Positions 13,213 through 49,810 are shown, counted from the first letter of the stretch. The stretch is 63,443 nt of DNA from Chara braunii (GCA_003427395.1 BFEA01000037.1:4076659-4140101); one strand, 5' to 3'. Numbers and translations: made by a program. The notes: generated by a model from the letters alone, not told the origin.

Positions 13213-14768
13213 CTGCGATGAGGCACAAACACATACCAACAATAATGAATCATCAAACACAAACCTGTAAATTAATTAGCACAACCACATTTGAAGTTCG
13301 CAATCCTGTCCTGATCAACTATCAAACTGACAATCTTATTCGCCTTTACCATCACTCCGGAAATGCATAGCCAGAAAAACGATCTCACGGCGTATTTCCA
13401 TCTCAAGAAACTGCAATCATACCTTCATTCAGTTTACACTGCAGTTTCCCACACAACTTTTAGAACATCAGCCAGGTCAAAAAAAAAAAACAAAAAAAGT
13501 GCTGCTCTCTTTTCGGGGGGCAGGACGGGCGGGCCTTATGGGGAGCAGCACAAAAATAAAACCATAAATACAGAAGCAAAACAATAGCAACAGGACACAA
13601 GTTGCCAGGCAGATAATACCCAGCATGCACGAAAACAAGAACAGAAACCGAGTAAGAGCGGCCAGACAAAGTGTACCCAGCATGCACGCATTGTTTTTTT
13701 TTTCCTTTGAAACAAGAAAGAAACACAAAAGACAATGGGTCTGGCCGATGGACTGGCAAGCATAGACTGCCACTAAAAAAAAACAGAATTCAGCCACGGA
13801 CGTAACCAACAAAAATAAAGCTGGGATGTGCAAAATCCCAATTAGCAAAACTCAATCAAAAACTGGCGGTTAAAGAAAACTGCCCGGCAGCCCTCTCTAC
13901 AGATGTCATTCTCTGCGTTTACATGCTACAACAACTGCAACAGTGCACAGCGCAGATATACCCCCATCTGCCACCATGAGATACACAGCAAATAGGTCAC
14001 ATAGCAGGATCTGCTCAAAGGCCTTTCAAAACAGCAGACAGTCCCTCTTATTACTGATGGCCTCCTGCTCAAGGAATCTTGCCACAGCAAATAGGTGACA
14101 TAATAACAGCATCTGCTCAAAGGCCTTTCAAAACAGCAGACAGTCCCTATTATTACTGATGGCCTGCTGCTCAAGGAATCTTGCCAGGCAGTGCGAGAAG
14201 TGGGTACGCAGCTAAGGTGTAGCCCCCACTGCTATGTCTACGTCTGGGTTTAGGAAACCAATGCATGACATCCAAAGTTGATTCTTACCGGCTCATTGTA
14301 ACCGTTGAATTCATTAACAAAGAACTATACCTAGTCCAGTGGCGCCTGCCCATTAGATCCCTGAGAGATAAGGAAGAGGGCAGCTAAGAGTCCAGGAGTG
14401 TCTCTGCAAGCTGGCTTTAGCGCAAAGGATATGCAACACAGCGTACGGCCAAAGACCAGCACCGAAAAGGAATCCTATTCCCATTATTCAAGGTCGTCAC
14501 TGCTGCCCTTCCATCTCATGACGCTTGATTGTAAAACGGATCATCAATCTTACGGTGCAGATTGGCCATTCATCTTTAAGTACCTCCCCATTCATTGCAT
14601 CCCCCCTTACCCCCTGACCTTCATCCCCGAGCAAAGTGAGAGAACAACAAAGAAAAAACAACAATGGTTACGAGCCTCACCCCTTTCCCAGGCAAGGCCA
14701 TCATACACCGCACTTGAACTAAGTCGAGAGTTGACATCGAATTTTCTTTTTTTCTTTTTTTCCGTCCT

Positions 14769-14866
14769 AAAATTTGGACCATTTCTCAATTTATGTGTCA
14801 TCCTCACGCAGGGGCCATGCTAATCTTCGCTGTGTTGTTCCAATTTTCACGCATTTCCCAAAGTTC
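14769..14866 (-). pseudogene. U6: U6 snRNA pseudogene or retrocopy
   Basis: aaaattggaacaacacagcgaagattagcatggcccctgcgtgaggatgacacataaattgagaaatggtccaaatttt matches plant U6. The ACAGAGA box is changed to ACAGCGA. An A-rich tract follows. Confidence 0.9.
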
Positions 14867-15055
14867 TGGATTTGGATTTTCAATAAGCTTGGCAGCAGCA
14901 CCTTCTGATGTGTCATTGCAGCAAGACTAGTACGGACACTCAAAAACGCACTAGTCGAATACGTTGAACCAAAATCACCACAACACCAAAATAACCACAA
15001 CAGAACTGTTTCATTATGACAACAAGGAGGATCAGGGATGGTGGTTATACTTTAC

Positions 15056-22169: not shown

Positions 22170-22641
22170 GAAGGAAGTGGAGCACAGACAGGATCCAGGT
22201 CGTGATGGAAGGTGCTCGTCGGCGTGATGAAGAATCGAGATGGGGACGAGGATGGGTGGGATTTGTTTATGGAGAGTTGGTATTCATTTTTATCGAGTCG
22301 GCACTGGGGGATATGACCGAAAGAGACACAGAGAGAGAGAAAGAGAGAGAGAAAGAAAGAGAGAGAGAGAGAGAGGGCTCAGATTCGGGAAACGCTCTTG
22401 CTCTTACTATTGCCTATGTGAATACTTTCCTTCCCTTTTTTTTCTTTTCCGCCGCTGACCCGAATGCCCTTCTCCCGTCCTTTCCTTTCATCTCGCTATC
22501 CCCCCCTCCCCCCTCTTGCTGCTCTGTGCACGGAGCCGCTGCGGGTCCCCTTGTATTTATCTATTTATGCAAGATTCTCATAGAGAGCTTTGCGGGTAGC
22601 TATAGGCAGAGAGGGAGAGGAGGATGACAATGACGGGCGAC

Positions 22642-22812
22642 TGAGTTTCACCAGCTCATCAGAGGCTGAACCCTTATATATATGTCATATCCATATACTG
22701 CTGTATATATAGAAAAAGAAACATATGTATATAAATATATATTTCAATACGTATATATTAGGGTTCAGCCTTCTGATGACTGAGCAAAACTCTGACAACA
22801 CAATCTGTCACA
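22642..22812. ncRNA. Two degenerate hammerhead copies in opposite orientation around a TA-rich tract
   Basis: Minus copy about 22642-22676 (agggttcagcctctgatgagctggtgaaactc). Plus copy about 22759-22812 (agggttcagccttctgatgactgagcaaaactctgac). Confidence 0.6.
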
Positions 22813-23028
22813 GTCCGCTCGCTTCTTGTCCCCTTCTCCATCTCTACTTGCGGATCACTGGGCATTTCTTTATAACGCTATATTTAGTATTTACGTATAT
22901 ATTGTCAAACAAAACTGCCCTGTAAATCGTAGGCAGATATATACATATATATAGTCAAAAAGAGCTGCCCGGTAAACTGTCGGCAGAGAGGGAGGAGGGA
23001 GAAGAGGACAACAAACGAAGGGCTGTGG

Positions 23029-23086
23029 CAAACTGTTCCGTCGGAGTTTCGCTGACTCATCAGGAGGCTGAACCCTCAACAGTCTG
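23029..23086 (-). ncRNA. Type III hammerhead copy, probably inactivated
   Basis: Same family as 27583-27640, but GAAA is changed to GGAA and stem II has a mismatch. Confidence 0.75.
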
Positions 23087-24182
23087 CAGAATCCCCTAAC
23101 TGATTACACTGTAAGTGATAATCCACCTTAACCCCGGCTGTGGTTAAGCACCAACGACTGCCCGACAACTGATACCCTGAGATGGGCACCAACCACTGCC
23201 CTCAAGGTACCTGTGGCAAAAGCCAAAGCAGACTATCACTCACCCACACCAGATGGAAAAATCTACAGACTGTCGGTATATGTATACATATATATACATT
23301 GTCACAGAACTATTGACTAAGAGCGTAAGCACGTGAAGTAGGAGAAATAAGATGAGCGAAGAAAAGAAAAATGAAAGGACAGACAGGCAAAGAGACAGAC
23401 AAACCAAAATGACACAAAACAGTGTCCTCTTATTCTTTGTTTCACTGTATTCTTATTTTTTTTCAGTGTTTTGCAAAAAACATCACAGTGAACAAGGGAT
23501 AAAAATAAAAAACAAAGGCACATTGAAATCATTCAGTTTCTCAGTCTTCTTAATGCCTCCTCCACCTTGCCTCTAACATATAAGGCTCGCCACGTTGATG
23601 AAATTGAGCGCGAGCTATATATATATATTGTCACATACCTATGAACTAAAAGAGCACACTTTGCAAAACAAACGGTAAACGTAAAATAAAAATCAGACCA
23701 ACATGAAGGGCACGCATACCATTCAATTTTCTCATTCTTTCAACTCCCCCTTCACCGTGCCTCTCATGTACAAGGCTCGCCCCATTGATGAAGTTGAGTG
23801 TGAGCTGCCCGCATCCCCGTGTGCCACAACGGTCCACTAGTACGCTGAGAAAGAGGCAAAGTAAAGGGGGATGGGATAAACACAGGGAAGCGAGACACAG
23901 AGAAGACAGACACAGAACGACGAAGTATGGAGTGTGGAATGAAGATGAAGGCAAAGGAGAGGATAAGAAAAGGCTCAAGAACGAGTCTGTCCTTGACGAC
24001 AGAGAGGACATACATTGTAAGGATGAGGTGGATGAGCACATTGAAGCCGTAGGTGAGAAGAATTCTCAGGACAGCAATTGCCACGTCACCCGGCATTGAG
24101 TCTGCCCAGCATACACACCCGGCAGATGAATATCGATTGCAGGCCAAATAACAAAAGAACGTTCACCACAAAAGACCATGCA

Positions 24183-25860
24183 TTAGGCATAGCTCCCATG
24201 ACCGCAAAATGAACATCGTGTCTGGATGTCGATGGTGCCTGCAGTCAGGATCGGAGGGACAGNGCAAAATGAACATCGTGTCTGGATGTCGATGGTGCCT
24301 GCAGTCAGGATCGGAGGGACAGTGTTGCATACTAGTGAAAGTGAACACAAGTATGACACAGAACCTAGAACCGACCAATAACAAAGAGCAATACAATGCA
24401 GTGGAAGATTTGAAAACATGGATCTGAACTCAAATCTGACTCGGACTACACACAGGCTCACACACATACATTCACCGGGTGAGGAGGCCTGGCGCTCCAG
24501 ACATGGAAGTTGGCGCCAGAGCCTGTGCACAACGTGTATGGACGAATGGAGGAGGAGGAGATGGCACCAACACAAAGTCACTGGAATAGTAATCCCAAAA
24601 TGTCAAAGATACAGAATCTCGAAATGTCGAAGTTACAGAATCTCAAAATGTCAAAGTTACAGAATCTTGAAATGCCGCTCGTATCAGATCTCCAAATAGT
24701 CCTCCCAACGTCCTACTCTGGAATAGTCTCAGTCCTGATGTCACCGATATCCCCCCATCAATCTCTGTCCCATAGTAACCGAGAAGATAGAAGGTTAGGG
24801 GAAGATGAAGATGGAGGAGAAGAAGAAGAACCGAGAGAGGGCAGAGGAGAAGGTGGAGATGGAGAGGTAGGGCAGAGGAAGATCCTCCTGCCCTGATCCA
24901 GTGCCCAGGCACCAACCTGCGGGTGCAAAGTGCCGCCTTGGAGCTGATGAAGACTCGCCCTCGTCGCTGGAGCCATGGCGCTCACAGGTAGGTGACAGGT
25001 AAAGTGTCTCCCTCTCGCTCTCGCTGCTTGCAGCTAGTGCTATGCCTAGCGCTCTGCCTGGAGCTGCGCTAATCCCAAAATAGCATAGCACTACTCCTCA
25101 ATGCCGCGGCCTCCAAGTCTGTCCCGAACAGACACCTGGTCGGTACTAAGTACCAGTGGTGGCCTGTTCGGCCTGGCTGCTGAGGAAGACGCGCCGTGAT
25201 CAGAACCGTCAAAGCTGATTTGCGGTTCAGATCGGACCCGTGGGGAAGTGGCAGCCTCAAACTTCGGCCGCCAGGCTCAAACAAAACACGTTTGAGCCAC
25301 TTTCCCGCTCAGGGCCTGCAGTAGCAGACCCGGGCCTAAAACCAGTTGCTGGGGCCTACCGTCGGTTTTTCCGAAGGTCCGGCCTTTAACCCAGGCCGGA
25401 CTGGCCCAGCATGGCCACGGTCTGGGATAACACCCTAGACCTAGCCGTCGGGCCTAGCAGGGCCCGTGTGGAATCCAGTATGTAACAGAGTCTACGCATG
25501 GATGCAGAAACCATGTCATAGTCTACACATGGATGCAGAAACCATGTCATTGTAGTGATTGTGCCAGAAAAATAACGGCTACAGCCATTTGTAGCTATGC
25601 AAAGGAGAAGGTCGCAGCGCGTTGGTACATCGTCCACCTGCAGCACAGGGTCAGAGGAATGATCTTCAGCATAAAAGAGATTGTGGATGGATTGGTGTGG
25701 CAAGAAAACGGCATCATTGTGTAAGCAGTCAATAACATCAGTTATGGCATGGACCAGGACGTCGTTGTCCCACAGCTCCAGTGGTCAGAGGCATGTACTA
25801 TGGCCATGTAATGGCCAGGTCCATTGCAGGCAGATGCAATGAATTGCAGTTGCTCACGCG
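24183..25860 (-). pseudogene. Divergent paralog of the protease/Cys-His ORF, interrupted by an insertion
   Basis: GPGHYMAIVHASDHW/ELWDNDVLVHAITDVIDCL matches RPGHHMALVRAAAQWELWDGGTMSQAIFDVNEFL. HNHYNDMVSA and HCPSDPDCRHHRHP lie on either side of the insertion. Confidence 0.6.
24323..25487. mobile_element. Solo-LTR-like or TIR insertion of 1165 bp splitting the Cys/His ORF
   Basis: Termini TGTTGCATAC...GTATGTAACA (TG...CA with a 10-bp imperfect inverted repeat). The flanks rejoin to match the uninterrupted paralog near 32130. No clean TSD. Confidence 0.55.
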
Positions 25861-27582
25861 GGCTGTACACTAAGTTTGTCTGCTGTTTGCCTACTCTGAG
25901 CCCTTTGGGACTTGATCCCGTGACCTACAGTTCGTACGTGTTGATTACTAGCTTGGAGTCCTGCTGGGCTTGATCCGTGAACCTGTCATTGGTAGTCTCT
26001 ATTTGGCAGTCTTAGACCCTTCAGGTCTTGCTGTTTTGTCCTTTTCTGCTCTTCTGGAAACTGGTAGGCCCATAGGTCTCTCGTTTGTGTGTCCTAGTCT
26101 TCGGTCCCCGTAGTCTAGATTTCCATCCACATGGATGTAGACAGGTCTTGACTGTTCGGACGTAGATGTTTGCTGTTTCGACGGTCAGATAGATTCGTAG
26201 GTGACTGCTGTGTTGCAGGTCTAGGGAAGTCGGGTAGAAGTAGGGAGAGGCCGGTGAGCTTGAGGCTCTTTCCTCATCTTTTTGGAAGTGGCGATGGGAG
26301 TACGCGAGCGGCACTATTTCCAGCGCTCAGTCTTCTTCCTCTTCGAAGGGGAACTTGGGCTGCCATTGGGCGCCCTGCTGCATGAGGAGGCAGCATCTGT
26401 AGGTCTTCCAGGTGCTGATGCCACTGCCGTCACGTTGCTGTTTGTGGGGTTGAAGAACAGCCGCTTTCTTCCTTGAGCGGCTTGCTTGTTGCTAGTTGCT
26501 GCCATACCAGGGCAGCCATCATCTTCTTCATTGAGCCTCATCTTCTTCTTCACGGTGGTTTGCGGCGCTGCAACTTGATCTCTGGCTCATGCCAGATCAG
26601 CACCTGTACTCACAGGCTCGGGGCATGATGAGATGCTGTTTTCAACAGTGGGCTATCATTGGAGGTTTGGGGTCGTAGGGAAAAGCAGTTTCGGTGAAGC
26701 TTCATTGAAGTGTATTGTCGGGGGTTAATTGGAGATGCTGTTTTCAACAGAGGGCTATCGTTGGAGGCTTGGGGTCGTAGGGAGAAGAGGAAGTTCCGGT
26801 GAAGCTTCGTTGAAGTGTATTGTCAGGGGTTAATTGGAGGTGGAACAGATTTTGTGGTTGAGACTCTTGGAGTTGTTAGGTTCACAGGAGGAGAGCAGAG
26901 GGTGTAATATATAATTGATTGAAACATTTTCTCTCAATTTTTATCTGGTTTTGGCTTCTGCTTTGCAATCTCTCTCCATGGCTATGGTGTGAATCTGCTC
27001 TCTACAGTCGGCCTGTCATTGCAGATGTGTATGGGAACATTTGAATGCGGTTTGGAGTTGTGAATCAGTCGAACACATAACACAGAGACGTGGAACGGAG
27101 GATTAAACGACTCACTTGCTGGAGCATTGCGTAGTTCAAGTTGGCAGTCCCTCATTGCTACTCGTAGGACAGCAATGGTAAAGCCTCTTTCCCTGGTATA
27201 ATTACAATCCTCTGGCTGTAGCAACGGGAAATCAGCATCAAGCTGAAGGGCGATTGCAAGGAAGTCTGGCGGTATATAAAAAGAGCGGTGAATAGCACGT
27301 ACATATGTCTGCCTCCAGTTTTGAGGGCAGTTTTGTTTGACGATATATTGTCACAGAACTATTGATTAAGAGCACAAACACGAAGTAGAAGAAGAAATAG
27401 GATGAGCGAAGAAAAGAAAAAATGAAAGGACAGAGGCAAAGAGACAGATAACCCAGAAAGACACAAAACAGTGTCTTCTTCTTCTTTGTTTTAGTGTTTG
27501 ACGATATATATCATCACAAATAGAACTGCCCGGTAAACCGTAGGCAGAGAGAGAGAAGAGGACAGCAAACGAGGGGCTGTGA

Positions 27583-27640
27583 CAAACTGTTTCGTCGGAG
27601 TTTCACCGACTCATCAGGAGGCTGAACCCTCAACAGTCTG
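27583..27640 (-). ncRNA. Type III hammerhead ribozyme with intact core (GUU site)
   Basis: CAGACUG-UU / GAGG-guucag-CCUC / CUGAUGA / GUCGG-ugaaacu-CCGAC / GAAA / CAGUUUG. Stem differences from the 4644 copy preserve pairing. Confidence 0.9.
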
Positions 27641-28123
27641 CAGAATCCCCTCACTGATTACACTGTAAATGATAATCTACCTTAACCAAANAGGAGGCTG
27701 AACCCTCAACAGTCTGCAGAATCCCCTCACTGATTACACTGTAAATGATAATCTACCTTAACCAAAATCAAAGTAGACTATCACTCACCCACACCAGATG
27801 GAAAACTCTACAGACTGTCAGTTCACACCCCATCACAAGCCAGCAAAACATCCACGAAACAAAGAAAGGTCTGTCACAGCCAAAAAATACACTCCAGACA
27901 CGCCGCTGGCACTCGAGGCACAGCATGGCCGCCTAGTAACGGCCCCGACCACTGCCGCTCGACCTGACCGGAAAAAAACGTAGCAGGAAGCTAGCGAAGT
28001 CGTAGTATATATCGTCACAAATAGAACTGCCCGGTACACACTATAAATCGGAGCGCAAAGGCGGAAAAATACAAAACAAGAAAAGGAAAAGAAGGAAAGC
28101 CCCACCTGTTCATCACCTCTTTC

Positions 28124-28201
28124 GTACAAGGCCAGCCACGTGGATGACAGGTTGAGCGCTGGCTGCCCCCATCCCCGTGTGTCACAAGGACCCACTTGCA
28201 C
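28124..28201 (-). ncRNA. Unidentified conserved pseudoknotted RNA motif (representative copy)
   Basis: Other copies at 23582-23616 (partial), 23768-23843, 29461-29541, 31056-31122, 31571-31649 (all minus) and 49581-49646 (plus). Compensatory changes GCCAGC/GCUGGC, GCUCGC/GCGAGC, GCCACC/GGCGGC and GUC/GAC versus GCC/GGC. Confidence 0.6.
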
Positions 28202-28409
28202 GCAGCCAAAAGGCAAAGAGGTAAAGAAAAGGAGGAAACCAAACCTGACAGGGAAAGAAAGCCTATCAGTCAAACAAAGCAAATGAGACATCCCACAGAT
28301 AATCCAATTGTCACAAAGCAAATAACACATCCCACAGATCAGCATTTTTTTTTCTATTCTTATTTTCTTATTTTCTTATTTTCTTATTTTCTCTTTTTTT
28401 TATTTTCTC

Positions 28410-28595
28410 TTATTCTTTTCTTTTTTTCTGTTTTTCTTTAACCGTCCCCACCTCGGCAGATACGACAGCTACGGTGAGGATGATGTGGATGTTCACAAGG
28501 ATACCCAAGGAGAGCTGCGCTAGCACAGCATTCAGCAGGACGGCTAGCACGAACCATCCCATCAAAACAGTCCTGACAGAGGACATGTTGTCCAC
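28410..28595 (-). CDS. Short hydrophobic ORF (putative membrane peptide) directly after the Josephin-like ORF
   Basis: Hydrophobic run GWFVLAVLLNAVLAQLSLGILVNIHIILTVAVV. Related runs (NVLIHLILTMYVLSV, HVFIQLTLTMYVLSI) occupy the same position in the copies near 24.0 kb and 31.8 kb. Confidence 0.35.
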   Translation of the reverse strand: MDNMSSVRTVLMGWFVLAVLLNAVLAQLSLGILVNIHIILTVAVVSAEVGTVKEKQKKRKE

Positions 28596-28598
28596 ATG

Positions 28599-29341
28599 TT
28601 AAAAAACAGCAGGACGTTCATCACAGTGTGGCATCATGCAGTTCTGATAGCGTCCTTGGGCACAAAAGGGACAACGTATATCTGGGTGATAGGGATGTGT
28701 ACAATGAGAAAATGTTGGACACCCTTCAGTACAGATGGCGGCAGTCGCAATAGATTGGTAATGGCTATGGCATAGGTGATGCATTCCACAGCCAAGGCGC
28801 ACTGCATCACTGTCCCGACAGGTGTCACAAGAGAGTCGGTCAATAATCCAAAATAATGTATGATTCGGCAATGCACGCAAAAATTCATTTACGTCAAAAA
28901 TAGCCTGACTCATCGTCCCACCATCCCACAGTTCCCACTGGGCAGCTGCACGAACGAGTGCCATATGATGCCCGGGTCTGTGTAAAATACAGGCAGAAAT
29001 ATGAGGATGGTTATTGAGGTCATCGCCTGGCGTCGCATGATGCATAAGAAGGTGGCGGCCGTGCAACGCTAACTGTAAGACATTTACAGTAAAACCTCCT
29101 GAGGTAGAGTATACTTACTGCCTTCAGGAGGTGGACTATTATGATCATACAACAACTGATTTTCAACAGCGACAAGCTGATACTCAGTCGTGACAAAATG
29201 GGAAGCAGTATAACATTGACGATGATAAGCCTGTAGGCAGACATTTGTGGCTGTCAAGCCACAAGTATTTGGTAGATCTGCCCGCAGATCTGATTCGGTC
29301 ACCACTGGAAAGCTAGGTCTGATCTGGAAGGGTCTGCGCAT
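28599..29341 (-). pseudogene. Josephin (MJD/ataxin-3-like) cysteine protease followed by a Cys/His-rich motif, with one frameshift at about 29085-29120
   Basis: Joining ORFs 29084..29341 and 28599..29066 gives TCGLTATNVCLQ..YT...F....QL...E, GGFTVNVLQLAL and ACILHRPGHHMALVRAAAQWELWDG. These parallel ataxin-3 LCAQHCLNNLLQ..FS...L....QL...E, GFFSIQVISNAL and SFICNYKEHWFTVRKLGKQWFNLNS. Downstream motif HHLCHSHY...CTEGCP...CTHPYHP...CPFC. Confidence 0.65.
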
Positions 29342-30075
29342 ATATATATTGTCACATGAATATCAGAGGGCAAAGGCAAAAAAAAACAGAAGAAAACAAG
29401 AAGAAAAATCAATTCGTTTTTTATCGTCTTCCTTACAACTCCCCCTATTCAAAACCTCTTGCATACAAGGCCGCCCACGCGGATGTAGGTTGAGCGGTGG
29501 CTGCCCCCACCCCCGTGTGTCATATCGACCCACTTGCACACAGCCAAAGGGCAAAGAGGCAAAGAAAAGAGGAAGGGATCAGCCAAATACAACAAAACAG
29601 GGGGCAACAAGCAATAGCACCAAAAACGGATCCTAGATGACAAGTCCCACATGCAAGCACCGCCCCTCCTCCACAGGCCAAACGACAGGACAAGACCACC
29701 CAGGACAAAACTCTAGTAAGCAAAAAAAGAAAAATCCCAGATTACATATCTATATACAGCAGCTGGCCTTGTTCGTCATCAAGACGTAGGTATTCCCATT
29801 TGTAAACCATTCCTACTGGGACAAAAAACATAAAAGACAATCCCAGATGGCGATTCCCACATGAAAGCACCGCCCCCTCACACAGGCCGAACAACGGGAA
29901 GCAACCAACTAGGATGCCAAGACAACAAAAGAGAACCCGGATGACTGGTCCCACATGAAAGCACTGCTATGCTTGCCAAAAGCGACTGAGCAACGGGACC
30001 AAACCAGCCGGGATGCAGACAGGGTTACCAAAACAAATTAGTAAAAAAACGGAACCATACATATATTGTCACAGA

Positions 30076-30780
30076 CAGGGTAACCAGCGTTCGGGACGGG
30101 CCAAACGCCCGAACCCGAACGCCCAAACGTACGGGACCCCTTGGGGATGCGTTCGGCCGTTCAGGCCGAACGCGGACCACAAAAAAAACAACAAAAAAAT
30201 CTAAAAAAAGATATGTTATGAAGAAAAATAAAATAAACAACCTTTGCCTGAGCATTACATCCAAATTTGGTAAGCATTACATCCAAATTACTTACCAAAT
30301 TTGATATAAAAATAAAATGCAGAAAATAAAACTAATAATCAAAAAATAAGAAAAAATGAAAAGAGAATTAAAATTAGTGAGTGAGCGAGCACGTTTTTGA
30401 TAAAATGCAGAAAATAAAACTAATAATCAAAAAATAAGAAAAAATGAAAAGAGAATTAAAATTAGTGAGTGAGCGAGCACGTTTTTGACACCACCATCTT
30501 TGGCGATTTTTAATTTTTGTTTGGCTTAGCAAAACGACTTCAAAATTTTTAGGCATGTACCTCACATCATGGTGAAGTCACAAAAAAAATTCAGAAAAAA
30601 GCTTATTTTAAGGCCCCGAAATATTTTTTGGCGGGGGCCGAACGCCATCGGGTTCGGACCCCGAACGGGACCCCGAACAGGACCCTGAAGGGCCTGAACG
30701 CCCGTATGTATGGAGGTCAGCACGCCCGTACGTATGGAGGTCAGCCCAGGGACCTCCGTACGTACGGACTGGTGACCCTG
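30076..30780. mobile_element. hAT-type MITE
   Basis: TIRs CAGGGTAACCAG / CTGGTGACCCTG. Perfect 8-bp TSD GTCACAGA at 30068-30075 and 30781-30788. Confidence 0.85.
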
Positions 30781-31861
30781 GTCACAGAGCTATTGACTAA
30801 GAGCGTAAGCACATGAAGTAGAAGAAGAAATAAGATGAGCGAAGAAAAGAAAAATGAAAGGACAGACAGGCAAAGAGACAGACAAACTAGAATGACACAA
30901 AACAGTGTCCTCATTTTCTTTGTTTCACTGTATTCATATTTCTTTCAGTGTTTTACCAAAAAAAAAATACACTGAACAAAAGATAAAAATAAAAAACAAA
31001 GACACATTGAAATCATTCAATTTCTCAGTCTTCTTAACTCCACCATGCCTCTAATGTACAAGGCTCGCCACGTTGCCGAAGTTGAGCGCGAGCTGCCCCC
31101 ATCCGCGTATGCCATAACAGCCATGGGAAAGAGGCAGAGTGAAGGAAGACGTGTTAAACACAAGGAAGAGAGGAGCAGAAAAAGAAAATCGATAGGCAGA
31201 CTTAGGAAGAATAAGAAAACGTGACACAAACATCTTCTTTATTTTACTGCATCTTTCTTTCTTTCACAGTTTTGCAGTTTTGGTGAAGAGTACCACGTTC
31301 ACTTTCCAGCGCACCTGCACTTCTTCACTTTTTATTCTCATTTTCACCCTTCAGACTTTTTCTTTGAGGGTGTTAGGGTGCACGGTACAAACAAAGTAAA
31401 ATGACACGAACTTATGTTATATATGTATATATATATTGTCACATATTTATAGACAAAGAGCTCGCTTCGTGAAACAAACACTAAAAATACACAAGACAAA
31501 CATGAAGAGCACACTGAAACCATTTATTTTTCCCATTCTTCTTCTAACTCCCGTTCCACTGTGCCTCTCACATGTGAGGCTCGCCACGTTGATGAAGTTG
31601 AGTGCAAACTGCCCGCATCTTCGTGTGCCATAACGGCCCACCTGTATGCTGTGAGAAAGAGGCAGGGTAACGGGGGAGGGTTTAAACACTGAGAAGAGGG
31701 ATGGAGAGAGGACAAAACAAAGAACGACCAAAGGAAACTGAGGAGTGCAGAATGAAGATGAAAGCAAAGAAGAGGATAAGGAAAGGCTCAAGAATCAGTC
31801 TGACCGTGGTGATAGAGAGGACATACATTGTAAGGGTGAGTTGGATGAACACATGGGAGAC

Positions 31862-32240
31862 CTAGCTAAGTATTATCAGTACAACAACTGCCAAGACGGC
31901 TAGCATTGAGCATGCCCACCATACACTCCCGACAAATGGCATGTCAATTGGATGAACACATGGGAGACCTAGCTGAGTATTCTCAGTACAACAACTGCCA
32001 ACATGGCTGGCATTGAGCATGCCCACCATACACTCCAGACAAATCGCATGTCGACTGCAGGCCAACATGAAGGACGAACGATCACCAAAAACCTCCGGGG
32101 GTGGAAGGTGCCTGCAGTCCGGAGCGGAAGGACAGTCCTCTACACACATACATGCAGAAACCATGTCACGGTAGTGATTGTGACAGAGAGTATGGCAATA
32201 TATCATACTCATGAAGCACCTGCACGGTGTGTGTGCAGGG
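31862..32240 (-). pseudogene. Third paralog, Cys/His-rich part only (5' truncated)
   Basis: HTLCHNHYRDMVSACMCVEDCPSAPDCRH matches both other copies. Followed by a hydrophobic segment and the pseudoknot motif. Confidence 0.6.
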
Positions 32241-32553
32241 TGCCATGCCCGAACAGCTGATGCACGTGCACCATGCACATCCCACACAGTTTGCACAAGG
32301 TGAAGTGCACTGGGATGTGTGTGCCTGCAACTTGTGCACGCAGACAGGTATAGCCATCTTTTGTGTGTGTATGTGTGTGAGAGAGAGAGAGAGAGCGGGA
32401 GCCGTTCGGCCTCAGCACGTCCCAGGATGAATGGCACGTGAGATTGTTGAATGTACACTAGAAATTGCCTGCCAGACCTCGATGGATCTGACGGCAATCA
32501 CATCCAGAGCTTAGTAGAAAAAGTTTGAGTGCACGTGGACAGGTATAGCCATC

Positions 32554-39800: not shown

Positions 39801-40909
39801 ACGAAGAGCCAAAGAGGAAATTCGAAATGATGAATATGCTTCCATAACTGACGAAGTGGAAATTCGTTTGCCTAACTCGGTTCACATTACTTCAAAGTTG
39901 AGTGGTCAAGGGGGTAATATAACGCGTCATTCGGGATAGGGTGGCCGGCAGTGTTCCGAATGAGGGTATGCCTAAATCGGTTCACATTACTTCAAATGAG
40001 GGTATGACGTACGTACCCGGTCGATGTATGAAATGTACGCACATGTAACTCTTGACTGATAGACAAATCAAGAGTTCGAAACCTGCCGGATACCGTAATG
40101 CTAACGAACGGCTATTCAATTTAGGCCACCCGCTTCAGGAGGATGGATGTGCTGCCCGAAGTCCCTTTTTTGGGGGACGAGGAGCCTAGCAAACTTTCAG
40201 GGATATCTTCAGCGACCAATTGAAGAAATACATCACATTCTTCAGCCAGCAGCCCTAGCGCCTCTAATAATATATTTGCACTCGCTCTCATCTCCATCTG
40301 TGCTCAAGTGCCTCCCAGAAAAGCACACCAATAGCTGAGAGAAAGTTTGTTTGCTGGAATGCCTCTCGTTGGAATTTTACCTTTCTTTTTCCAGTTGAGG
40401 GCGTTTAAACAAGCGTCTGAACAAATGGAGGAACTGGCGCAAACAGCACAAGTGCAGCAGGGTGTTGGGGAGGCCCTGTAAGCCGAGCGAACTGTAGAGG
40501 TAGGGAGGGAGGGAGGGAGGGAGGGAGGGAGGGAGGGAATCGAGGGAAGTATCCCAAGTTTCAGCCCCTACACATCCCACATAGGTTGCCTTTGACCGCT
40601 ACTGTTTCTGGACTGGCTAGTCCAAGCACGACACCTTGTACAGTGGGGCCCGCCCGGCTCTCGAAAGCGCACATACAGCAACATGTGTCTGAAATGGAAC
40701 GCGCACGCATGGTAGGTGCACAGCGAACAACGTATGAGAGGGGACTGCTGCTGCACCCGTGATGGGAAATTCTAGTAAGCGAAAGGACATACATAGACGA
40801 GGGGGCGGGAGGGCGAGAGATAGATAGTGAGAAAAGGCATAGTAGCAAATAAAATGCGTGCACTGTAGACTCTCGGGTTTGTTTCCTGTCCTGAATGTTC
40901 ATTACTGAC

Positions 40910-42193
40910 CTGTCCAAGGTCTGCGAGCAGCTGTCCGTCGGCTCCAACGCAAGAGAGATTCCACCTCAGCAAGGGCCTGAGCCTTTCGTCCATTCTGCAC
41001 GCCCCGACTGTCTGCCACTGGAACGTCTGAACCCAAGATGCCACAGCTCCTCCTCCCATTCCCATAGGATTAGTGGAACACCTGGCACTTCCCTCGGCAG
41101 CGGGCTGCAGCCCCCCAGCCGAAGAAACGCCAGGAGCAGCAGCACCCCCAGCACCACCATCACCGCGTCCTCCATCTCTCGCTTCCCCTGCCAAGCCATC
41201 ATTCCTCAGTTCGGCCTCCATGGAGGCCGAGCTCCTCCCTCTCGTCGACCCACTTCTACTGGCAACCCGACCACTGCCCCTCCCCCCAACAGTCACACCC
41301 ATCTGTCCACACGATCTCGAATGCAGGAGCGATCGTCGACGGCACCCACCATCGCGATCCTCCCCCGCTCCTCCTTGATTGAGCATCCCGCCTCCGGTTC
41401 CCGCCATCAACCCCTCGTCGTTATTCCTTGAAGCCCCTCCCACGTATGCCCAAGGGAGCGCAGGCGCTCTCCCATAGACCTCGCCCACTGCTCTCAAACC
41501 AGAGGCAAGGCGTTGATCCCCTCCCCCTCCAGAGCGATCGAAGCAGTCCCACCCCCCCTCGTCACTGCTCTTCGACGTCGAAGCCACACTAGACGACCCG
41601 TAGCTGTTAGCCACAGACGAAGACGATGACGAAGTCGAGAGAGGGAGAGAACAAGCCGGAGAAGAACAAGCGTTTAGCTCCACGTCCGCCCGATTTTTCT
41701 CTCTGTTATTGTTACTTGACTCGCTTCGCCTTGCCTTGTTATCGATATTTCGCCCCATAACCCCATCGCTGCTACGTTCTGACGGGCTACGGCTGCCACC
41801 TGCTAAACCGGGTGGTGTTGAGGTCGGCCCTGCTCTAGCCGGTAACCTGGGAGGAAGGCCCGTGGTTTTCCTCCCGCCGTCATACCTCTCCAGTAACGGG
41901 AGGATTCCTCTAAGTCGATGGCTTCGACTCCTATCCCGATCCCGTGAAGAGCCCGTTCCGGCGGCGGAACGCGACTCCCAACCAAGATTGCTGGTTGCTT
42001 GCCAAGCCGACCCTTCCCGTCGATCTTCGTCCTCGTCGCCATCATGGGGGATGCCGTCGCAGTCAACATGAGGTCCAGGCACTCGCCCTCCGAAACACCT
42101 ATCGTGCCGGAGCTGATCATTCCTCCCAGCATCAGCCATCGCCCTTTGACTTCGGGCGACTCCAGGGTCCTCGTCTCGACTGCTCCGGACTAA

Positions 42194-42228
<35 letters not shown>

Positions 42229-42754
42229 CCCCTATCTGCGAGCGGTAGTTTTGGTACCCCCTCCTATTACGAAACGAGAACTTCTTCCTCTCCTCCTCCC
42301 TCTCCTCCTCGGAGGAGGAAGAGGAAAATGGCGACGACGGCAATTTGGACGGAGCTCGACAGTTAAAAGGGGCCGCACCATCCTGTATCAGAGCACTGGC
42401 GCAGTCATCTGCGCCTCCTCGTCCGCCGCCGAGAACCCATCCACGGCCGTCTCCATCTCTAGTCGCCCCTCCTCCCCCTACTCCCCCTCCCGCCCCTGCT
42501 CGACAGTTCAAAGAGGCGGCACCATCCTGTATCCGAGCACTGGCGCAGTCATCTGCGCCTCCTCGTCCGCCGCCGAGAACCCATCTACGGCTGTCTCCAT
42601 CTCTAGTAGCCCCTCCTCCCCCTCCTCCCCCTCCCGCCCCTCCCCCTCCGTCTATTCTCACCAGGCCCCGTGCCCCCTCTTCCGCCACCCTGGGTTCTTC
42701 AATGACCGCTTCTCCCGCAGCACCGTACTCCCCGTTACCCCTGGCGTCCTCCAT
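40910..42754 (-). CDS. Exon 1 (615 codons) of a large plant-type gene with an RPN13/Pru-like domain; Gly/Ser/Arg-rich N-terminus
   Basis: Starts at ATG 42754 and is open for 1845 nt. Ends ...WQTVGACRMDERLRPLLRWNLSCVGADGQLLADLGQ at a phase-0 donor CAG|GTCAGT. This end resembles, from memory, an uncharacterised land-plant family (At2g39950-like; unverified). Confidence 0.8.
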
Positions 42755-49244: not shown

Positions 49245-49317
49245 TGATTACCTGTTCAAGCTCCTCCTCATCGGAGATTCAGGAGTGGGGAAGTCATGCC
49301 TTCTCCTTCGGGTCGCC
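49245..49317 (+). pseudogene. RABD: Isolated RabD/Rab1 (YPT1-like) GTPase exon, apparently non-functional
   Basis: Encodes [24 protein letters not shown] (G1 P-loop) in 73 nt ending at a GT donor. The acceptor reads CAT rather than CAG, the conserved RFA is RVA, and no further Rab exons were found. Confidence 0.8.
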
Positions 49318-49410: not shown

Positions 49411-49810
49411 GTAGGGTTCTGACTCCTGAGGAGTTGGTAGGTGAAACGTCAAGGAAACAGTTTGTCACAACCACTCCCTCGTTCGTGGTTCTCTTCTCCC
49501 TCTCTCTCTACCTATGGTTTACTGAGTAGTTTTGTGTGACGATAAACTATGATTGAGAGTGTGTGACAATATGTATCTTCTGACACACAGGGATGGGGGC
49601 AACAGTCAGCAGTCAACGTGTGTCATCCACGTCGCTGGCCTTGTACGTAAGAGGTAGGTGATGAACACGTGGTCCTTCCCTTGTTTTCCTTTTTTTGTTT
49701 TGTCTTTTTCCGCCTTTGCGCTCTGATTCCCTGTGTGACAAAGATATATAGATGAGTCGATGAAACTCCGACGAAACAGTTTATCACAACCCCTTGTTTA
49801 TTGTCCTTGT
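49411..49810 (+). mobile_element. Second cluster of the ribozyme-bearing retroposon family
   Basis: Degenerate hammerhead 49411-49465 followed by the family tail ending tgtgacgata. Pseudoknot motif 49581-49646 with a tail homologous to 28012-28120. Partial hammerhead gatgagtcgatgaaactccgacgaaacagtt at about 49750-49782. Confidence 0.75.

Follow-up and report, generated by a model that had tools for sequence, protein, structure and literature searches.

Among the repeats in a 63,443-nt stretch of the Chara braunii genome (GCA_003427395.1 BFEA01000037.1:4076659-4140101; hereafter, the window) is a (TA)n tract packed with short units, some of which carry a hammerhead ribozyme while others carry remnants of a Josephin-like protease. 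This raises the question of whether ribozyme, protease and TA targeting belong to one mobile element, as a preliminary description of the window had proposed. We conclude that the region is very probably an insertion hot spot in which dead Chlamys-type tails of three subfamilies (J-a, J-b and J-c) and a separate short hammerhead family are stacked in one (TA)n tract. The window itself is eukaryotic nuclear DNA, holding a U6 small nuclear RNA (snRNA) gene and a Rab-like exon.

An array of units with constant 3′ ends

We derived unit boundaries from self-BLAST, a scan for termini and a listing of tails in the window. At least 14 units were resolved between 22640 and 32200, placed head-to-tail or tail-to-tail at (TA)n junctions (Table 1). 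Throughout the array the 3′ ends are constant and the 5′ ends are ragged: minus-strand units close in (T)GTGAC(A/G)ATAT(A), followed by (TA)3-8, and the next unit then starts at a differing internal position. TATATYGTCA is found at 9 places in the window, where 0.09 would be expected, and all of them lie within 22.9-31.4 kb. The smallest units measure 29-46 nt and the largest 1.3 kb, apart from one copy that occupies 3.7 kb including two foreign insertions of ~1.2 kb. Three units lie on the plus strand, and one of them (27303-27348) meets a minus-strand unit tail-to-tail at one (TA)n. Further loci from GCA_003427395.1 (L003 to L007) carry the same repeat families as the window, and tail-to-tail pairs across one (TA)n are present in the window (27344-27348), in L004 (13677/13710), in L005 (8278/8286) and at the end of a metagenome contig, L002. 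Members of these families are also piled up on a smaller scale at 49413-49807, within an intron, and at 4638-4816, within (CA)n. The pile-up of units is real and far beyond chance. The preliminary description had counted at least 10 units at (TA)n junctions with TGTGAC(A/G)ATATA-like ends and had taken them for the 3′ parts of retroelements, with fixed 3′ and ragged 5′ ends, in (TA)n; the count is borne out and the unit map supports the interpretation.

By tail and body, the units sort into four families. J-a comprises U9, U10 and 49577-49750; J-b comprises U3, U6 and U11; J-c comprises U4, U12 and metagenome contig L002; and the hammerhead family comprises U1, U2, U5, U8 and fragments. The last 30-300 nt agree within each family, whereas agreement across families is confined to the last 8-11 nt, so that the shared 3′ tails reported earlier hold within the four families and, between them, for these last nucleotides only. 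The terminal sequence is GACAATAT in the J families and, for the most part, GACGATAT in the hammerhead family, and the corresponding element ends are TGTGACAATAT(AT)n and TTTG(TG)ACGATAT(AT)n. The canonical J-a tail is GCGCTCYGATTCACAGTGTGACAATAT (L003 14281, 14664 and -14829; window 49750). Self-BLAST shows that the array units diverge by 7-24% and differ in family, length and orientation. Exact duplicates of 59 nt and 75 nt flank a single N at 24263 and 27691, respectively (regions 24204-24322 and 27616-27766). These duplicates look like gap-closing assembly artefacts, and the one at 27691 adds 76 nt to hammerhead unit U8.

A Josephin-like coding remnant

The J-a copy U9 carries a Josephin-like coding remnant together with Cys/His modules on the minus strand (28447-29341). 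None of six window ORFs (open reading frames) matched a Pfam family on its own. When a 155-amino-acid window ORF was compared with 1.8 billion representative proteins, three short relatives and no long protein were returned. A word-indexed protein search with one relative, P0001, found no match besides P0001 itself, and metagenome scans with P0001 and with a further relative, P0002, gave no matches; protein pieces were searched separately in this work, not as joined or read-through models. P0001 is 71% identical to U9 and reads in frame through the point at which the window changes frame, and U9 therefore carries a frameshift near 29110 and not an intron. A small intron between the two Josephin halves was considered and rejected, given that P0001 reads through and the frames differ by one base.

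On the Pfam Josephin family (PF02099; cut-off 26), P0001 scores 25.2 bits (E 1.6e-5). Its relatives P0011, P0016 and P0006 score 40.3, 34.2 and 33.1 bits, with P0011 and P0006 above the Pfam cut-off. The Josephin domains of P0001 and P0011 are 34% identical (E 2e-13), with the CGL..N.CLQ and GH..ALV motifs in register, and features from a protein language model also indicate Josephin clusters (score 0.90). PDB sequences, searched with profiles and with single sequences, returned nothing for Josephin or for the reverse transcriptase (RT) considered below. The Josephin-like protease domain is real, and the window copy is frameshifted and dead. Two tandem Cys/His (RING-like) modules lie downstream of Josephin, and one relative has a weak zf-RING_5 match. 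What had earlier been read as a hydrophobic ORF at 28410-28595 is the wrong frame of Cys/His module 2 (tblastn of P0002, 46% identity).

Relatives carry a GIY-YIG endonuclease and a telomerase-like RT

Relatives were traced from a further protein, P0003, to the Chara scaffold piece L003, and from the RT-like ORFs of L003 to L004-L007. Positions 7431-13690 of L004 hold a near full-length element with all parts on one strand, in the order GIY-YIG ORF, CxC ORF, RT ORF, run of N, Cys/His modules, 3′ untranslated region (3′UTR) and tail TAGTCAATAGTTTTGTGACAATAT(AT)n. Upstream of the RT ORF, the ORF at 7431-8462 has a readable GIY..YIG motif and matches Pfam GIY-YIG with an E of 7e-4 (20.3 bits). 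A CQC motif (CxC) was identified by reading the sequence of ORF 8180-9049, and this segment is 60% identical in L005. The structure model of the RT ORF (9134-10324) has a predicted local distance difference test score (pLDDT) of 74, and the top nine matches to it in Foldseek are all telomerase RTs (E 3e-7 to 3e-5), a result to be expected of a Penelope-like RT. The RT motifs DK, QxxGxPMG, IDD and FLG are nearly invariant among relatives, and RVT_1 was weakly matched in 5 of 12 relatives; in Pfam searches it was not matched by the L003 and L004 RT ORFs themselves. The identity of these ORFs as RTs rests on fold, motifs and the weak matches in relatives. No APE or RLE endonuclease family was matched in any ORF scanned. 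Extension to longer copies, as had been suggested at the outset, yields in L004 an element with a GIY-YIG endonuclease and a telomerase-like RT, which classes it as Penelope-like.

The L004 3′UTR matches the window at 30781-31418 in U11 (84% over 670 nt), 23283-23616 in U3 (84%) and 27345-27464 in U6 (88%), and U11, U3 and U6 are therefore tails of the L004 element type. In L003, L006 and L007, RT is followed collinearly by Josephin and the two Cys/His modules. Likewise, P0006 and P0011 contain the RT-thumb region and Josephin within a single ORF. J-a, J-b and J-c are 5′-truncated 3′ parts of related Chlamys-type Penelope-like subfamilies. The architecture of the J element is a single long ORF encoding an N-terminal GIY-YIG, CxC, a telomerase-like RT, Josephin and two Cys/His modules, followed by a 3′UTR with a motif of ~95 nt. 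As far as its published description extends, the Josephin element is already known, being of the Chlamys-1_cBra type published in 2021 (PMC8557442).

Several points weigh against this assignment. The window contains no endonuclease, CxC or RT match anywhere, in agreement with the earlier statement that no RT is visible in it, and its link to the element consists of 84-93% DNA identity in the 3′UTR and 27-71% protein identity to relatives. The Pfam GIY-YIG match (20.3 versus 22.6 bits) and the RVT_1 matches fall below the curated cut-offs. J-a, the family of the Josephin unit, is joined to an RT in none of the loci sampled, all J-a copies being 5′-truncated, and the position of Josephin in L004 falls within the run of N. 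The Josephin structure model has a pLDDT of 43, too poor for a structure search. (TA)n as a target is not fully separable from (TA)n as part of the element, and Chlamys insertions are reported from (CA)n and (C)n, (TA)n being given for Naiads (PMC8557442), whereas the window copies lie in (TA)n. Finally, Chlamys-1_cBra was matched through its published description, and J-a, J-b, J-c and the more distant L006/L007 family are all candidates for Chlamys-1_cBra itself.

Two observations concern the RT-bearing relatives more broadly. Between RT and Josephin, L003 9572-10400 encodes an acidic, threonine-rich linker with a repeat of ~20 amino acids (TDAMEEH.ETKGD...), which is annotated in the genome as the N-terminus of P0003, a 240-amino-acid ‘gene’. 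P0024, a relative of the same RT region with 233 member sequences, has a Ulp1/C48 SUMO protease domain in place of Josephin. Differing ubiquitin-like-modifier proteases appear to be attached to one RT lineage.

A separate hammerhead family

We found a type III hammerhead (RF00008) on the minus strand at 27584-27639, scoring 45.8 bits (E 1.3e-7; cut-off 48.5), with an intact core and a GUU cut triplet. A hammerhead at 23030-23085, also on the minus strand, has a mutated core (GGAAC for GAAAC) and scores 32.5 bits, and one at 4645-4699 reaches 48.5 bits. These Rfam matches, like the P0001 and P0011 alignments for Josephin, uphold both components named in the preliminary description. In ~230 kb of Chara DNA there are ~19 matches to the hammerhead family, the longest being U8 (423 nt), and none extends beyond the U8 5′ end. 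Four of the ~19 start at U8 position 299/300 (window 22674, 22760 and 49413; L004 14108), which is the first or second nucleotide past the predicted cut; in the window this cut falls at about 27631/27632, between GUU and GAGGG. The family thus seems to use self-cleaved RNA as one class of template. With about one-fifth of its copies starting at the cut site, it provides indirect evidence of ribozyme cutting in vivo.

The hammerhead units have no ORF on the element strand, and none was seen joined to an RT. The L004 element contains no hammerhead at E <=0.1, and no hammerhead reaching the Rfam cut-off lies next to any RT in L004-L007. No direct repeats bounding hammerhead units were found in the window, and hammerheads occur singly, one per unit. 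These units form a short non-coding family of their own, not part of the Josephin elements. The mini-units at 4638-4816 end right past helix III (CACAGTCG, then TG repeats); they are a related hammerhead subfamily with another 3′ end and target.

Hammerhead unit U8 and Josephin unit U9 had been described as sharing a terminal sequence. Self-BLAST indeed gives a 34-nt match at 94% (27505-27538 versus 28006-28039). The alignment of U9 to the canonical J-a tail stops at 28037, and the hammerhead-family segment is absent from six other J-a-type tails (window 29346 and 49750; L003 14281, 14664 and -14829; L004 -13710). The match is real, and what it records is a 29-nt hammerhead-family fragment abutting one Josephin copy, not a property of the family. 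A comparable 13-nt piece follows a J-c tail in L007 (24546-24569).

A conserved motif in the 3′UTR

Every J family has the ~95-nt 3′UTR motif, which persists even between families whose proteins are about 30% identical. Its position is roughly that of the hammerhead in other Penelope-like elements. One 6-bp stem has three pairs with compensatory change among eight copies, and added copies supply more complementary variants; a proposed outer helix shows no covariation. Of the structured RNA claimed earlier, the conserved motif and the one covarying 6-bp stem stand, whereas a folding-energy signal is lacking. The motif was rejected as an unusually stable fold, its energies equalling those of shuffles (z-scores -0.4 to 0.9), and as a known ribozyme, no Rfam family being matched at E <=1. 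As a site-specific cutter it was also set aside. Three J copies that start in or near the motif begin at three different positions, which argues against a site-specific cut there, unlike the repeated single-position starts of the hammerhead family.

A distant Josephin-bearing family in L006 (13600-13700), with 27-34% protein identity to J-a and J-c, has a shortened form of the motif. At the 3′ end of this family, GTGACAATAT was not read within 3.5 kb beyond the motif.

The motif could be a functional RNA of Josephin-type Chlamys, recruiting the RT or, less likely, acting as a new self-cleaving ribozyme, with the hammerhead mini-elements parasitising the same enzyme through the common (U)GUGAC(A/G)AUAU(AU)n end and the (TA)n target. 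We consider this whole proposal improbable. If true, it would name the missing autonomous partner of the Chara hammerhead elements.

How the array may have formed

What the sequences show directly is how the units are built, which relatives they match, that the domains of those relatives are collinear, and that some 5′ ends fall at the cut site. From this we propose that the array arose by successive retrotranspositions into one (TA)n tract, with the (TA)n tail of each copy renewing the target. The GIY-YIG endonuclease would nick (TA)n, and the (UA)n end of the RNA would pair with the nicked repeat and prime reverse transcription. Incomplete copying would leave ragged 5′ ends, very short abortive copies would leave the tail pieces of 13-46 nt, and RNA self-cleavage would set some 5′ ends of the hammerhead family. 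Because (TA)n is self-complementary, insertions would occur in both orientations and produce tail-to-tail pairs, and renewal of the target by each insertion would explain the pile-up. The Josephin-element enzymes may also have mobilised the hammerhead family in trans: the target and ~8 terminal nucleotides are shared and the 3′UTR motif is not, which amounts to weak evidence. A Helitron or MITE (miniature inverted-repeat transposable element) origin of the units was rejected on coding orientation, ragged 5′ ends and RT-bearing relatives.

Our reading of the region as a stack of four families has to be weighed against the single undescribed composite retroelement of the preliminary description, in which Josephin, Cys/His, a hydrophobic ORF, a ribozyme and a common tail would form one element related to Dualen/RandI or constituting a new class. 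The adjacency of the hammerhead and Josephin units with their 34 nt at 94%, the similar 8-11 nt at the ends of all units and the Josephin-like domains noted in Dualen (PMC8557442) speak for such an element. However, the 34-nt match is missing from the six other J-a-type tails and the canonical tail alignment breaks off at 28037, the near full-length L004 element is without a hammerhead, and the hydrophobic ORF is a frame artefact. Kinship with Dualen/RandI fails as well, the endonuclease of L004 being an N-terminal GIY-YIG and its RT fold being nearest telomerase. The units belong to four families rather than one, and a family with the Josephin architecture is already catalogued as Chlamys-1_cBra (PMC8557442). 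We therefore regard the composite element as very unlikely, and the finding of a new class joining ribozyme, TA targeting and Josephin protease does not stand.

A DNA-level artefact, whether mis-assembly or satellite-like amplification in place of serial retrotransposition, is likewise very unlikely. The exact 59-nt and 75-nt duplicates beside N and the N runs elsewhere would fit it, but units varying in family, length and orientation and diverging by 7-24% would not. The same junction types recur on scaffolds L003-L007 and on the independent metagenome contig L002. One tail, moreover, contains a hAT-like MITE with an 8-bp target duplication; this MITE sits inside the U11 tail, which therefore predates it. 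A more serious contender accepts the stacking through a common (TA)n target and takes the hammerhead units to be 5′-truncated 3′ ends of an autonomous element like Chlamys-2_cBra, one that has a zf-CCHC ORF and, towards its 3′ end, a hammerhead. A canonical 3′ hammerhead is described for Chlamys-2_cBra (PMC8557442), and the hammerhead-family copies, all <=423 nt with ragged 5′ ends, look as truncated copies would. Against this origin, 0 of the ~19 matches extend past the U8 5′ end, and no cut-off-level hammerhead accompanies an RT in L004-L007. We regard it as possible, though on the doubtful side.

With the four-family reading, three details are new. Insertions of these Chara Chlamys subfamilies are in (TA)n and retain the end TGTGACAATAT, whereas the published account gives (TA)n for Naiads and not for Chlamys (PMC8557442). 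The 3′UTR motif, with its covarying stem, is kept even between distant families. The hammerhead family has its target and terminal nucleotides in common with the J families, and ~1/5 of its copies start at the cut site. Together, these details of target, motif and hammerhead provide a candidate enzyme for moving Chara hammerhead elements.

Feature map and other features of the window

Table 1. Units and sub-features mapped in the window, with strand and the basis of each assignment.
Feature	Position	Strand	Basis
Hammerhead mini-units, two of 115 nt, head-to-tail in (CA)n	4638..4816	-	Rfam 48.5 bits at 4645-4699
Hammerhead-family fragment, 5′ end at ribozyme cut site, 3′ side broken	22640..22685	-	BLAST to U8 positions 300-332
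Hammerhead-family unit, 5′ end at ribozyme cut site	22760..22895	+	Inverted match to 27522-27630, 76%; starts at U8 position 300
U1, 45-nt hammerhead-family tail piece, (TA)n on both sides	22898..22942	-	
U2, hammerhead-family unit; hammerhead 23030-23085 with mutated core	22945..23283	-	77.5% to 27504-27822; Rfam 32.5 bits
U3, J-b 3′UTR end, 5′-truncated within conserved 3′UTR motif	23294..23617	-	84% to L004 3′UTR; 88% to 30781-31094
U4, J-c copy: 3′UTR, Cys/His module 2, Cys/His module 1, partial Josephin	23624..27302	-	tblastn of P0002 and P0001; reading frames; comparison with L002
U5, 46-nt hammerhead-family tail piece, tail-to-tail with U6 across one (TA)n	27303..27348	+	85% inverted match to 22897-22942
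U6, 154-nt J-b tail	27344..27497	-	88% to L004 3′UTR end
U8, longest hammerhead-family unit, 423 nt once assembly duplicate around N 27691 is excluded; type III hammerhead 27584-27639	27507..28005	-	Rfam hammerhead
Hammerhead-family tail fragment, 29 nt, joined directly to U9 3′ end	28008..28036	-	Matches U8 positions 392-423
U9, J-a copy, dead	28037..29341	-	71% identity to P0001; 92.8% to 3′UTR of L003 J-a copy
U9 3′UTR conserved motif	28104-28199	-	
U9 Cys/His module 2, other frame	28447-28614	-	tblastn of P0002 residues 138-193 to 28614-28447, 46% identity
U9 Cys/His module 1	28647-28829	-	
U9 features: Josephin Cys motif; His motif	near 29261-29263; near 28965-28973	-	Reading frames
U9 lesions: frameshift; in-frame stop	near 29110; 28599-28601	-	Reading frames
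U10, 717-nt J-a-like 3′UTR fragment, internal repeats, conserved motif 29443-29537	29345..30061	-	85% to 28102-28237
U11, J-b 3′UTR fragment, tail split by 705-bp hAT-like MITE (30076-30780)	30062..31425	-	84% over 670 nt to L004 3′UTR
U12, J-c copy: 3′UTR, Cys/His module 2, part of module 1; 5′ boundary approximate	31432..32197	-	tblastn of P0002, 61-66%; 76% to 23618-24128
Second pile-up, in intron after Rab-like GTPase exon	49413..49807	+	Self-BLAST, tail listing

The foreign insertions that interrupt U4 lie at about 24330-25524 and 25866-27064 and are unrelated insertions: a 31-nt duplication marks the edge of one, which is GC-rich, and the other holds a tandem repeat of ~105 nt (26630-26842). 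The 5′ truncation of U4 falls just past the Josephin Cys motif. In U12, Cys/His module 2 carries a 107-nt tandem duplication. The 705-bp element inserted exactly in the U11 tail is non-autonomous. Its terminal inverted repeats are 12 nt long (CAGGGTAACCAG / CTGGTGACCCTG) and its target duplication measures 8 bp (GTCACAGA), in the manner of hAT transposons; it contains an exact 88-bp tandem duplication at 30312-30487.

Outside the array, 49256-49311 (+) is an exon encoding the P-loop of a Rab1/Ypt1-like GTPase, and four units of the array's families are piled up in the intron that follows it. Two members of this second pile-up are of the hammerhead family, namely a unit that begins at the cut site and a fragment, and two are of J-a, namely a tiny tail and a 3′UTR unit. 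A U6 spliceosomal RNA gene lies at 14768-14871 (-; Rfam 77.7 bits), with another U6 in L005 (17574-17681). Two minus-strand ORFs, at 140-3559 (1139 amino acids) and 40772-42754 (660 amino acids), are unusually long for non-coding chance and match no Pfam family at E <=0.01.

Comparison with known systems

The closest known system is Chlamys-1_cBra of Chara braunii, in the Naiad/Chlamys clade, whose ORF of ~1,800 amino acids is described as matching Josephin weakly and as containing a Cys/His motif of unknown kind (Craig et al. 2021, PMC8557442). It comes from the same species as the window elements, and the description includes an N-terminal GIY-YIG, a CxC motif, an RT with a DK motif, a C-terminal extension with weak Josephin and then conserved Cys/His, and no canonical hammerhead (PMC8557442). 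Its copies are also reported to be often 5′-truncated, to lie in tandem or inverted order, to include short tail pieces and to be inserted in microsatellites (PMC8557442). The window-type elements have two tandem Cys/His modules and a conserved 3′UTR motif, of which the published passages on Chlamys-1_cBra make no mention (PMC8557442). More generally, the Penelope-like insertion features listed by Craig et al., namely fixed 3′ ends, ragged 5′ ends, both orientations and tiny tails, match the array (PMC8557442).

According to the same account, most Chlamys are without a hammerhead, Chlamys-2_cBra and the PLE-X families having a canonical one at the 3′ end (PMC8557442). The window hammerhead units resemble Chlamys-2_cBra and PLE-X in their type III hammerhead near the 3′ end, their Penelope-like insertion and their occurrence in the same genome, but differ in being <=423 nt, with no element-strand ORF, and in never having been seen joined to an RT. 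MRC1, a non-autonomous Chlamys of Chlamydomonas, is likewise made of short non-coding units in head-to-tail arrays and resembles autonomous families at its 3′ end (PMC8557442). In contrast to MRC1, the window hammerhead units carry a ribozyme and resemble the Josephin families in the last 8-11 nt only, of which ATAT may be target-derived.

Two more distant systems invite comparison, one for the protease and one for the ribozyme. Dualen/RandI LINEs (long interspersed nuclear elements) have APE and RLE endonucleases and a LINE-type RT. The relatives described here differ in having an N-terminal GIY-YIG and an RT fold nearest telomerase. What they have in common with Dualen/RandI is a retroelement polyprotein with a Josephin-like cysteine protease (as cited in PMC8557442). 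As for the ribozyme, the likeness of the window units to plant retrozymes lies in a type III hammerhead within a non-coding mobile element of the green lineage, whose RNA is shaped by ribozyme cleavage. Plant retrozymes have two long terminal repeats (LTRs), each with a hammerhead, plus a primer-binding site (PBS) and a polypurine tract (PPT). The window units differ in having one hammerhead per unit, ragged 5′ ends and microsatellite tails, and no LTRs were found (PBS and PPT were not specifically searched). With these ragged 5′ ends and microsatellite tails, the window hammerhead units follow the Penelope-like style of insertion, unlike retrozymes.

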